A DNA stretch of 64,000 nt, taken from positions 29,512,001 to 29,576,000 of the forward strand of contig OZ365113.1 in NCBI GenBank assembly GCA_977030845.1. Reading direction: 5' to 3'. Below the pieces are notes generated by a model, which saw nothing but the letters and a program-made list of their open reading frames with translations, did no database searches and was not told the origin of the DNA. This DNA comes from Fimbriosthenelais zetlandica (lineage: Eukaryota). Below, one piece after another: positions 2,072 through 15,410 of this stretch. How positions within the stretch are numbered: position 1 is the stretch's first letter; each line of letters opens with the position of its first letter. The position numbers were made by a program, and so were the translations under genes.

Positions 2072-3393
2072 GGAGAATTAGAGGAAGGAAAGATGGAAGG
2101 AAGGAAAGAATGTGGATCGCATTGGAAATTGGACAAGAATGTGATGTGGTTGGAAACGAGCCCAGGGTCGGCCAAAACGAGCCTCCAAACCCCAGGACTA
2201 CTGAAAATGGAGTCTGGGCAACCACTTTTAAGATTCTGAGGATATTTTGAGGAAAAACTCTACTATCAGGGCAACCACTTTTTATATTCTAGTTGCCTCA
2301 GACATTAGAGCCTGGTCATGATAGGCACGTTTTGCACCTGTAGCAGTACTGTTGTAGCATCAATAAAATATCCACATTTTCAAAACAAAATATCCACCTG
2401 GGTAAACTTTGACTCCCGGTGTAGACATACTTTAATTTTTCATCAATGCCACAATGATTTATCAATAGAATATAAACAGGCTCCGACATGGAAAGCATGA
2501 TAATGCACTTGAGGACCCAAACTCTCTTGGTGCACATTTTATTAGACATGTCAGAATATAAGAGGCTCTTTTGGACATGTGAAAATTGACACGGCTTCCA
2601 TGCCTCTCACCTCGCTTCCAACACCTGCTACCTGACATAGGCCAAGGACGGGACATGTTTCTGGAAAAAGCTGAAGATTACCCCTCTTGATTCCTCTTGC
2701 TTTTTGAATTAAGGAATTTCATATGGAAAAGGTTCCTTCAAAATTGTCTATACGTGGGTAATTTCGAACCCACGAGTTATGTCGCCAAGCTGATCAACTG
2801 ATCTCCTTCTGCCATCGTGTGTGTATACATCCATGTGGTATAACGTAAATTAAATCTTGACAAGATGTTGGTGGTAGCAGTATTAGAATATGGGATCAAA
2901 CAAACCCAATTATCCCCCATAATACAGCCACCACCTGGTCTTCCTATACCCTGCTTTATTCTCCAATAATTCTTCCCATCCACGCTCCTCTTGCGCTCTC
3001 CTCATTTTCTATAGGTTTGTTATACACCTCCTCTATAGGCGTTTATTATATGTGGTCAGGGCTAGCTGCACCAGCTGTCTATGCTCTTTCCTGCCCACTC
3101 ATTTCCTTCTCTTCACACCCTTCCTATTCCTTTCCATCTTATTTCTTTGCCTTTTATTCTGTTGGGCTTGTAAGCGGCAGTCGGTCCTACCTTTCTTTCC
3201 CCAGCATCACAGACTACTAGCTGCGCCACCTTGGTGATGTAAAGGGCATTACATTGGATGAGCTAGTCTCGTGAATCGGTAACTAACAATATATCCTACC
3301 AGAGAGACTGGTGTATTCTCACTGATCATACCATCCTTGGCACTAAGAATATTACGTTTCAAGTAGCATCTATATAAGTTAGTTTAGTACCAT

Positions 3394-3418
3394 CAAAGAT
3401 AGTTCTCCACTATCTTTG
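3394..3418. mobile_element. 25-bp CA...TG palindromic insertion with perfect 7-bp TSD (P-superfamily-like footprint)
   Basis: GTACCAT [CAAAGATAGT tctcc ACTATCTTTG] GTACCAT. Confidence 0.65.
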
Positions 3419-3445
3419 GTACCATTCTTTCATGGTTTGTTGGGG

Positions 3446-3472
3446 CAACGAGACTTCATTCTAGTCTCGTTG
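3446..3472. mobile_element. 27-bp CA...TG palindromic insertion with 6/7 TSD
   Basis: GTTGGGG [CAACGAGACT tcattct AGTCTCGTTG] GTTGGGA; shares the CAACGAG terminus with the 5536 and 10065 elements. Confidence 0.6.
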
Positions 3473-13100: not shown

Positions 13101-14044
13101 AATCTGTAAACAGGGGGTCAGAGTTAGAGGTCTTAGAGAATAAATACGACATTGAAACAAGGATTATATTATCCAATCTGACATGGGAAAATGTCAACTG
13201 ACAGAGGATGTGATGGACAGCCTATAAATGTTAGCTGAAAGTGCTTATAACCCTGTCCAGGCAACAGATGTCTTTAGGCATTCTCAATGAAAAAGGGCAC
13301 AATTCTTTAAGGCATTCCTAGTGAAAAGAAAATTAGCCAAATATTTTTTTGGAGGGAAAGACCAGATTAGACTGGTTTTTGATAGATAACTGTAATTTAT
13401 AGGCCTACATATGTTCTAGTTTCTCTCAAATTTTCAAACTTCAATTATAAAGAATTATTTCCATAGCGATACTGTTTACTGTCTTTAAACTTGTATCAAC
13501 TTGAATAAGCAATGTCTATGACAGAGAGGACGAAAAGTAGATGAATAACAAAAGAACAAGATGAATATATGAAGATCCAAAGAATGTCATCAACAAAACA
13601 TCAAGAAGTCAATAAATGGTTGAAAATGCCAAAATGAAGAAGGCAGAAAAGGATAAAAACATTAAAAACCTCAAAGTAACAAAATATCAAGAACACTACA
13701 AGTAAATAGAGGTAAAAAAGAACCTAAAACAACAACGAATCAAAACATTGGGAAAACCAAAATAAACAATCAACTGGCTAATAAATTTTCGCCATAACAG
13801 TTTCCTGACTGTTACATATCACGGTGGCTGAAGGCGATGTACCATCTGGCCATTTGAGCCTCGTCGCCGATTTCTGGGTCAGTGGCGAAATAATGTTTCA
13901 ACCTACACACACAGGAAAATAAACAAAACCTGGAAAAACAAAAAATGTACCTTCACAACAATCTTCCAGTCAAGATGATTCAGTGAAATAATGGGTATAA
14001 ACTGCAGTACAATTGAACTGATTTATAGCAATGAAAGGTATGAT

Positions 14045-14082
14045 CAGAGACCCTATATGATAATAAATATATATGGTCTCTG
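14045..14082. mobile_element. 38-bp CA...TG palindromic insertion with 6/7 TSD
   Basis: GTATGAT [CAGAGACCcTATAT...ATATAtGGTCTCTG] GTTTGAT. Confidence 0.55.
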
Positions 14083-15410
14083 GTTTGATATGACGCTAAT
14101 GAGTGAGTGTCCACCACCACCTCATCAAAGCTGATTTATCTATGTGTTAATTGTAGATAATAGAACTAATATAAGTACATATAGGTGTGGCATACCACGT
14201 AGGTATAAGTGTATAATGACATTATATACCAAAGGATACATACTTCCTCGTGAGAGATTACAAAGTACTTTCTAATTTTCCGGCCTAAATTATCAACATA
14301 TCCATATATAAATAGGGTGATAGCTTGTAATAAGTCACGCTAGAAATAACTCCACTGGTATTAATATTGTAGATTCTGGCATGAACCTGTTCTAATATTA
14401 ATGGACTATTGGTCACGATACAATATGTAATTTTAATATCATATTTGTGAATTTGTACGGTAGCAGCTCATCATGGAACAAGAAACATATTCCATTTAAT
14501 ATCATTTTCAGATTCTAAGTTCTAAGACTACAAAAAAAGGAAATAGTTTTCAATAATACTTTTGCTGAAGAGTATCTCGATCCTTCATTTTGCATGTCTT
14601 CATTTATTACTAGTAAATGCCAATGGCACAAATCATTTCACTTGGTTTTTACCTCATGATGATAAATGACTGTACATGGCAACTGGAAATACTGGTAGTG
14701 AATTAGGTTGTGGAATGTAGGAAAAAGTTCTAGTCTTTGGCCTTATCATATTAGTTGGTTTATAACAATAGATTGTCTTGGCAGATGTTCAGACAGGTCT
14801 ATATGATTAATTGCCCTTCTGACAATTTATTGGTGGAAATAGGTTTATGTGTGATATGTACATTGTACTCTTAACGTTTTTTTAATGGGCTGAGTCAAGT
14901 TGATAATCTTCATAATCTTGCCTTTGGATAAATTATTTTTATGAGATTTGTGAAGATCGGGAAATGGTGTCACCTGAAAGTCTGAAATGAGGCAATGGCC
15001 TGAAAAGTTGAAACCCTATATAGGGTATATACCGGTACTTTACTAAGTGTGTGTCAATTTATAAGCCAAGTGATATTTTAATAATAAAGTAAAGTTTCTA
15101 TAAGATTAGGAATTGAAATATAAATTAGAAGGGATTGGAATGCATTTAATTGTGTATGTGCATGACTGCATATAAATTATATGATTAACATCTATAAGGG
15201 ATCCATGAATGTACACCCACATGTTCTAAACCTGACTTGTGTCAAGCAGTTCTGAGGATATCAATTACAATTCATGTATCTTATCATAATTGGCCTCACT
15301 CACTCTCATTACCTTATCTCGATCATTTATCAAAGGTCTAACAGTCCGAATGGTACTGAGAAACAAAGCGGACCCTTATTATGGTCTTAACATGTTCGAG
15401 GTAGAAGGGG

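Follow-up and report, generated by a model that had tools for sequence, protein, structure and literature searches.

Cut-and-paste elements such as Tc1/mariner and hAT leave scars at their donor sites. Scars of Tc1/mariner keep 2–3 nt of the element end with the TA duplication, and those of hAT are short palindromes derived from the flanks, with an 8-bp duplication. MITEs are also short, palindromic, flanked by target duplications and present in many copies. P elements are known to yield internally deleted derivatives. The P transposase of Drosophila is peculiar in making an unusually long staggered cut of 17 nt, and the footprints of P elements keep both copies of the target duplication and a limited number of terminal-repeat nucleotides, with variable junctions and fillers (PMC7776569). 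Galileo and 1360 (Hoppel), which belong to the P superfamily in Drosophila, make 7-bp duplications with a preference for the palindrome GTANTAC (PMC4168063). No description of genome-wide scar families was found for Galileo or 1360 in the literature searched.

In the genome of Fimbriosthenelais zetlandica, sequence comparisons make it very likely that a large class of tiny insertions, here called scars, are donor-site excision remnants of P-superfamily cut-and-paste transposons, from a 7-bp-duplication branch like that of Galileo and 1360. Like the Drosophila P footprints, they keep both copies of the duplication and a limited stretch of each terminal repeat, with variable junctions and fillers. 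The resemblance extends to the 31-bp terminal repeat and to the class of transposase found in the genome, in which a THAP domain is combined with an RNase H domain interrupted by a GTP-binding insert. They differ from the P footprints in that the duplication is 7 bp rather than 8 bp, in that retention of the element end stops at 19 nt (16–20 nt by family) rather than 17 nt, and in their natural, genome-wide accumulation in a non-insect animal, where scars of the main family are about 60 times as numerous as intact ends. Galileo shares the duplication length and the type of target preference, but its terminal repeats are very long and foldback-like, whereas those described here are 31 bp, with unrelated end sequences. 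Unlike the scars of Tc1/mariner and hAT, the present ones keep 6–19 nt of each element end. Copies of a MITE share their full internal sequence, whereas here only end pieces are found, in lengths that vary between sites.

The window analyzed is a stretch of 64,000 nucleotides. The initial annotation had described six palindromes of the CA...TG type in it, each flanked by 7-bp repeats; all six were found at the positions given below (no strand is assigned), and the flanking duplications are perfect in four and carry one mismatch in two, as had been counted. Scar 1 (3387–3425) is a 25-bp remnant of the CAAAGATAGTGGAGAAT... family at 3394–3418, composed of 10 nt from one end and 15 nt from the other and flanked by GTACCAT (3387–3393 and 3419–3425); the same 25-bp product was found at three further sites by the genome-wide search. 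Scar 2 (3439–3479) has a 27-bp remnant of the CAACGAGACTAGAAT... family at 3446–3472 between GTTGGGG and GTTGGGA. In Scar 3 (4277–4329), two copies of ATATAAC flank a 39-bp remnant of the CAAGAATAGTA... family at 4284–4322, in which the left end contributes about 19 nt and an unlike right end about 18–20 nt: one end reads ...TATACTAACG and the other ...GAGTAAC, so that they are not two copies of one arm. Scars 4 and 5 belong to the main family. Scar 4 (5529–5580) is a 38-bp remnant at 5536–5573 between two copies of TTCAAAC, in which 4 nt of filler accompany 18 nt from one end and 16 nt from the other. Scar 5 (10058–10118), flanked by two copies of GAATACC, is a complex 47-bp remnant at 10065–10111 that comprises, in order, a 17-nt left end, a second left-end copy of 16 nt and a 13-nt right end; repeated end pieces of this kind are also present at C1:9594169. 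Scar 6 (14038–14089), a 38-bp remnant at 14045–14082 with AT-rich filler, belongs to the CAGAGACC[C/A]TATAT... family and lies between GTATGAT and GTTTGAT. A seventh, Scar 7 (63569–63601), which the initial annotation had not included, is a 19-bp remnant at 63576–63594 with CATAGACAT arms between two copies of GTAAAAC. Scar 5 is thus not a simple hairpin, and Scar 3 joins unlike ends. CA...TG termini are the rule but have exceptions elsewhere, one related family in the fetched loci having CT...AG ends (CTTAGAGTAAAAT...). None of the ten open reading frames in the 1–20 kb region around the scar cluster has a Pfam match. Two 10-mer matches to scar termini, at 52384 and 24521 of the window, were read and judged to be due to chance.

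The 7-bp duplications are far more frequent than expected by chance, as judged against shuffles and mirror-repeat controls. Among 30 short palindromes with perfect arms in the window, matching 7-bp flanks occur solely in those of the CA...TG type. At the strict setting, 20 composition-preserving shuffles of the window gave no match, and at the relaxed setting the real window gave nine (seven of them CA...TG) versus 0–4 in ten shuffles. The excess is specific to the length of the repeat: the window and the fetched loci together gave 25 matches at 7 bp, of which 22 are of the CA...TG type, versus two at 6 bp and two at 8 bp, the fetched loci being biased in this count, as they were picked for one family, and the window being unbiased. 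Repeats of 6 and 8 bp are thus at background level, and all seven scars in the window have 7-bp duplications with up to one mismatch. For the main family, 25 scars (24 distinct sites) were tallied in the window and the fetched loci; 18 have a perfect duplication and three have one mismatch, that is, 21 of the 25 have a 7-bp duplication within one mismatch, as do both of the intact elements described below.

Scars of the same kinds are spread over the whole 447-Mb genome. The main family, hereafter family 1, has the commonest end, CAACGAGTATAG..., whose terminal 16-mer has 314 genome matches (none for the reversed control). A search requiring 11 nt or more from one end and 6 nt or more from the other gave 645 strand matches, versus three control matches; since the first 100 matches listed represent 70 distinct sites, the genome contains about 450 short scars of family 1. 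The CAAGAATAGTA family has 168 strand matches (one in the control), and most of its readable junctions consist of one left-type and one right-type end, as would suit an element whose two ends differ rather than a hairpin artefact. There are 65 strand matches for the CAAAGATAGTGGAGAAT family and none in its control, about 20 distinct sites with variable junctions for the CAGAGACC family, again with no control match, and four distinct sites with differing junctions for the CAACGAGACTAGAAT family. At least seven scar families exist; the scar-family termini include CAACGAGTATAG, CAACGAGACTAG, CAAGAATAGTA, CAAAGATAGTGG, CAAAGAGCCTAT, CAGAGACC[C/A]TAT, CATAGACAT, and CTTAGAGTAAAAT. Furthermore, four untargeted scars with perfect duplications were seen in loci that had been fetched for different purposes and total about 222 kb, a density that would correspond to thousands genome-wide.

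Longer elements carrying the scar termini, whose existence the initial annotation had anticipated, were found for family 1. Two are intact, one of 968 bp (L033:899–1866) and one of 1047 bp (L040:1501–2547); both are non-coding and have 31-bp terminal repeats and a perfect 7-bp duplication. The full repeat was read in family 1, the ends of the remaining families being seen as 16–21 nt in scars only. Thirty nucleotides of the 31-bp repeat are kept at only seven ends in the whole genome. Open reading frames adjoining the solitary intact ends at L044 and L045 have no Pfam match, and when the 968-bp element was used as a DNA query, only about ten diverged, non-coding copies or fragments were recovered. 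A 75-bp piece of this element also matches the inside of a multi-copy repeat of more than 10 kb (L068–L071); the match does not lie at an end, and the repeat has no similarity to P-transposase. The same repeat supplied one comparison of an occupied with an empty site: L068 has a single CACATAT where its paralogue L070 has CACATAT, a 25-bp palindrome and a second CACATAT. Similarly, L033 has a single ATCACGG where its paralogue L043 has a 23-bp palindrome between two copies of ATCATGG. These two empty sites, which are paralogous sites rather than alleles and both lie outside the window, demonstrate that the scar together with its duplication is an insertion. The duplications of family 1 have the consensus [G/A]T-N-W-N-A-[C/T], where T occupies position 2 and A occupies position 6, each in 36 of 42 after symmetrizing, which agrees with GTANTAC and bears out the Galileo/1360-like palindromic preference proposed earlier (PMC4168063).

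Family 1 scars are 18–50 bp long and retain 6–19 nt of each end in unequal arms, together with unrelated fillers, templated repeats of end pieces or joins at microhomologies such as TATA. Both copies of the duplication surround remnants of both ends, and the junction varies between sites: in a hand tally of 70 sites among the matches listed, about two thirds of family 1 junctions were seen only once. Identical products do recur at separate sites, for example a 12+7 join at six, an 18/10 join at four and a 19+1+19 product at seven or more; plausibly, this is explained by a bias in repair. The retained length has a sharp ceiling. Among 100 listed places that match the first 19 nt of family 1, only five extend further into the repeat, namely three intact ends and two remnants that end at nt 22. 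Full products most often have the form 19+19 or 19+1+19 nt, and the limit is 19 nt for family 1, about 20 nt for family 2 (CAAGAATAGTA) and 16–18 nt for family 3 (CAAAGATAGTGGAGAAT). The arms are therefore capped as a staggered cut predicts, at 19 nt in the main family rather than at the 16–17 nt expected by the initial annotation, and the 17-nt stagger assumed there would have to be replaced by one of about 19 nt (16–20 nt by family). With this correction, the reading of the palindromes as excision scars of P-like elements is supported, and all the refuting conditions named in the initial annotation turned out in its favor.

A mechanism that would account for these features is as follows. On insertion, the element would duplicate 7 bp of the target, favoring a palindrome of roughly GT-N-W-N-AC. 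On excision, the transposase would cut one strand exactly at the boundary between element and flank, and its cut in the other strand would fall within the 31-bp terminal repeat, about 19 nt from that boundary. Each flank would thus be left with a single-stranded tail comprising at most 19 nt of the element end. End joining would then trim, anneal or fill the tails and seal the break, and the product would consist of the duplication, 6–19 nt of one end, an optional filler, 6–19 nt of the other end, and the second copy of the duplication. The long stagger inside the terminal repeat, and its difference in length from that of P, are inferred from the scars; likewise, we infer the polarity of the cut strands, the repair pathway and the P-type transposase as the mobilizer of these ends.

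Enzymes of the appropriate type are encoded in the genome in numbers, in keeping with the P/THAP9-type activity suggested at the outset. Thirty-eight genome matches to PF12017 exceed the cut-off, and open reading frames contain THAP, TNP-like RNase H N-terminal and GTP-binding insertion domains, the RNase H domain being split by the insert; no match to PF12596, the C-terminal domain of Drosophila P, was found in the genome. The copies are numerous and 97–99.9% identical to one another, their named relatives are the THAP9 and P transposases, and the best relative in a protein word search is 63% identical. For relatives in other organisms, at two near-identical places, neither terminal repeats nor scars were detected. 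The transposase loci L046–L055 lie wholly within their elements and contain no scar-family terminus. At L052, an unrelated CAACGAGTTCG... end adjoins a truncated P copy.

Since the fetched transposase loci lack a scar-family terminus and the intact family 1 elements are non-coding, the scars might have been left by a different or undescribed superfamily with 7-bp duplications and a long stagger, the P-type genes being bystanders. To our knowledge, however, duplications in the remaining superfamilies are of another length, or else hairpins form on the flank and no long stretch of element end stays behind. The assignment to the P superfamily draws on four indirect features, namely the 7-bp duplication, the CA ends with their repeat of 31 bp, the palindromic preference for GT...AC targets and the long stagger. 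These are independent of one another and all point to P, the stagger far exceeding that of any other characterized superfamily (PMC4168063; PMC7776569). Another superfamily as the source of the scars is thus improbable.

Next, the palindromes could be ultra-short MITEs, that is, mobile units of 20–50 bp that acquire a fresh 7-bp duplication at every landing, an idea close to the minimal mobile units considered as an alternative in the initial annotation. In this sense, an identical 27-bp product is present in L011, L014, and L015 with the different duplications ATTGTAG, ATTAGAC, and ATCAGAG, and the full 38- and 39-bp products recur many times. Copying, however, is expected to yield uniform copies, and the scars do not share a single full-length sequence of much the same size; instead, about two thirds of the family 1 junctions among the matches listed are unique, with unequal arms of 6–19 nt and assorted fillers. 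Even among the recurrent forms, the 19-bp one has 7 nt of one end, too short for recognition, and some are joined at microhomologies (TATA or a single A). Mobile units of this size are therefore highly unlikely, the variation of the junctions between sites speaking against them, and nothing here argues that the recurrent 38/39-bp palindromes are still recognized by a transposase or used by the host.

Equally hard to credit is an origin of the scars as extreme internal deletions that arose when template-directed gap repair following excision was interrupted: internally deleted P derivatives, the truncated P copy at L052 and the templated end-piece repeats in some scars would suit it, but a continuum of lengths (25, 40, 100 nt) is then expected, whereas retention stops at nt 19, only two of about 97 listed non-intact ends pass this point, both to nt 22, and there are only about ten mid-sized copies or fragments.

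If the scars are excision remnants of P-superfamily elements, they may be read further as a fossil record that quantifies P-type transposition, a reading toward which we lean slightly. The long staggered cut would then be a conserved property of the superfamily with a family-specific length, not a peculiarity of Drosophila P, and a mechanistic hallmark of P transposase would extend far beyond insects. The point where retention stops would reveal the position of the second-strand cut in each family without biochemistry. The scar-to-intact-end ratio would gauge the departure of elements versus their residence, as well as the repair route in the germ line; at about 60 to 1, it suggests that excision with end joining outweighs copy-restoring repair. 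Scars of the same family a few kilobases apart, such as those at 5536 and 10065, may record local hopping. These scars, in which the genome seems unusually rich and which can be read as a log of transposon traffic and of the cutting mode of the enzymes, would escape repeat maskers that rely on long consensus sequences. Some P-type scars have themselves received insertions, TA-to-TAGGCCTA scar-type insertions being seen inside them.

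All six insertions listed in the initial annotation (3394-3418, 3446-3472, 4284-4322, 5536-5573, 10065-10111, and 14045-14082) are present, as seen by reading the region and by an inverted-repeat scan. Each starts with CA, ends with TG, has inverted ends and is directly adjoined by 7-bp direct repeats, perfect in four of the six, as had been claimed, and with one mismatch in the other two. A scripted scan of the whole 64 kb found 30 short palindromes whose perfect arms reach 9 nt or more, and matching 7-bp flanks occur only in CA...TG ones. The duplications are above chance: the strict setting gave no match in 20 shuffles of the window, and the relaxed setting gave nine in the window, seven of them CA...TG, versus 0-4 in the shuffles (n = 10). 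Direct repeats 6 or 8 bp long in the same position are no more frequent than background. An additional scar at 63576-63594, with a GTAAAAC duplication, is the seventh in the window.

A scar with its duplication originates as an insertion. Empty sites with a single 7-mer, anticipated in the initial annotation, are found in two cases, both between paralogous repeat copies. Among four copies of a repeat, L068 has a single CACATAT where L070 has CACATAT, a 25-bp CAAAGAGCC... palindrome and CACATAT again, and the other two retain a partial scar. Similarly, a 1-kb element copy (L043) carries ATCATGG on both sides of a 23-bp CTTAGAG... palindrome, and another copy (L033) a single ATCACGG. The L068-L071 repeat is multi-copy and >10 kb long, with 90-99% identity between copies (G000 C39:1872500-1882499, C32:1257200-1267199, C29:14938600-14948599, and C19:22254000-22263999). 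A 75-bp stretch of it matches a subterminal segment of the 1-kb P-like element at 84% identity, and no P-transposase similarity was found in the repeat. One family-1 scar (see below) is shared by both copies of a 4.9-kb tandem segmental duplication with satellite arrays of 22- and 24-bp periods (L032, G000 C1:68178000-68187000), and is therefore older than the duplication.

The scars fall into families across the assembly (447 Mb, 79 contigs), in which the window is C19:29512001-29576000. The 16-nt end of the main one, family 1 (CAACGAGTATAGAAAG; window scars 5536-5573 and 10065-10111), occurs 314 times genome-wide and never as a reversed-letter control; in 26 distinct loci read, nearly all occurrences are short scars, every one with a separate 7-bp duplication. 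A gapped pattern (one end represented by 11 nt or more, a spacer of up to 50 nt, and the opposite end by 6 nt or more) gave 645 strand hits for this family versus 3 in the control, and since the first 100 rows correspond to 70 distinct sites, family 1 is estimated to have left ~450 scars. The claim of several subfamilies holds, the other window families being likewise multi-copy with variable junctions: CAAGAATAGTA... has 168 strand hits genome-wide (control 1), CAAAGATAGTGGAGAAT... 65 (control 0), CAGAGACC[C/A]TATAT... 34 (control 0), and CAACGAGACTAGAAT... four distinct sites (control 0). Two more families that were not queried, CTTAGAGTAAAAT... and CAAAGAGCCTAT..., surfaced on scanning the loci read.

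Longer elements with scar-type ends, also expected, do exist: two intact family-1 elements of 968 bp (L033:899-1866, duplication GTTCCCC) and 1047 bp (L040:1501-2547, duplication TCTGTAG), in both of which the terminal inverted repeats are exactly 31 bp long. Only seven ends keeping 30 nt of the repeat are found genome-wide with up to three mismatches tolerated, and the element body survives only in ~10 diverged copies or fragments, at 76-91% identity; scars thus outnumber intact ends by ~60 to 1.

The palindromes might be small mobile copies rather than scars, a reading disfavoured by their junctions. In the 70 family-1 sites tallied by hand, the two kept arms are mostly unequal, each of 6 to 19 nt, roughly two in three junctions occur only once, and many contain 1-17 nt of filler or repeated end pieces; several recurrent products join at microhomologies, e.g., TATA giving an 18-bp scar. 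Furthermore, the two element ends of the CAAGAATAGTA family diverge after nt 11, and most of its scars with readable junctions join one end of each type, as expected if an element with two ends was excised, and unlike what a hairpin artefact or a copying process would give.

Excision is also consistent with a ceiling on arm length. The outermost 19 nt of the family-1 repeat have 115 matches; among the 100 listed, only five continue along the repeat, namely three intact ends and two stopping at nt 22; the remaining ones switch at nt 19 (in a minority, possibly at nt 20) to the other arm, filler or flank, and 19+19 nt and 19+1+19 nt are the commonest complete products among the matches listed. 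The longer arm measures 17-19 nt in 27 of the 70 sites and is never clearly longer. Ceilings of the CAAGAATAGTA and CAAAGATAGTGGAGAAT families are ~20 nt and 16-18 nt. Such a length step is the expected remainder of a fixed second-strand cut within the repeat. Arm length is thus capped, as a staggered cut would predict, but in family 1 the cap is 19 nt rather than 16-17 nt and the implied cut ~19 nt rather than 17 nt. The two 22-nt remnants (C1:16931498 and C19:35383587) consist of a 22-nt piece of one end and then a T, the second end not being visible in context at the former; they may reflect one-sided or aberrant cuts.

Drosophila P transposase makes an unusually long stagger of 17 nt (PMC7776569); the scars imply a similarly long stagger here, of ~19 nt in family 1. 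Likewise, two P-superfamily elements, Galileo and 1360, duplicate 7 bp of target with the consensus GTANTAC (PMC4168063), and the duplications here are also 7 bp, with the matching family-1 consensus [G/A]T-N-W-N-A-[C/T] (position 2 is T, and position 6 is A, in 36 of 42 each, symmetrised). The P-transposase family PF12017 has 38 genome matches over the cut-off, in several multi-copy groups, and adjoining ORFs encode THAP, TNP-like RNase H N-terminal and GTP-binding insertion domains. Named relatives of these genes are THAP9 and P transposases. The copies are mutually 97-99.9% identical, and one THAP exon is open in two of five. In the loci read, which lie wholly within their elements, no transposase gene was found between scar-type ends, and a P-type transposase is inferred to have excised the scar families. 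One P-transposase element copy ends early at L052:1329 (L052:1240-1400; G000 C13:15601274-15604432), and a different element starting CAACGAGTTCGAAG... begins 30 nt from this truncation; with that end, the heptamer CAACGAG is common to at least three end families.

In the proposed mechanism, an element would insert at a GT...AC-like site, duplicating 7 bp; a P-type transposase would excise it, cutting one strand at the boundary and the other ~19 nt inside the 31-bp repeat, and leave each flank with a tail no longer than 19 nt; end joining would then trim, anneal at small homologies or fill, and seal the break. The insertion and end-joining steps are supported by the anatomy of the scars, and the staggered cut is suggested by the ceiling together with established P transposase behaviour.

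A stretch of 10.7 kb (3.4-14.1 kb) holds six scars from four or more families. The two that belong to family 1 are separated by 4.5 kb, versus a genome-wide density of about one per Mb, although the window was chosen for its cluster. Close same-family pairs are also found at C1:11885303/11886326 (family 1), C10:45827961/45828728 (CAAGAATAGTA), and C11:30952922/30960269 (CAAAGATAGTGGAGAAT). These fit either an insertion hot spot or local reinsertion, a behaviour known from P elements (PMC7776569); in a rough count on C1, four gaps <20 kb versus ~2 expected is not a significant excess of near neighbours.

Several P-type scars are themselves scarred: GGCCTA has been inserted at TA, once or more per scar, which gives TAGGCCTA (G000 C11:13030665-13030701, C10:30133678-30133724, and C11:17641097-17641147). 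Excision footprints of P elements are textbook knowledge from Drosophila experiments; for organisms other than insects, the part of the literature covered yielded neither natural genome-wide families of such scars nor a cut length deduced from them. The window also contains a GGCCTAGGCCTAG run (46670-46698) and a TGAGGTATCA...TGATACCTCA palindrome in three repeat copies (9477-9518, 27978-28015, and 41512-41538), with identical flanks (...ctgcctcac / cccagtcaca) and without a 7-bp duplication; this repeat is probably a short interspersed element.
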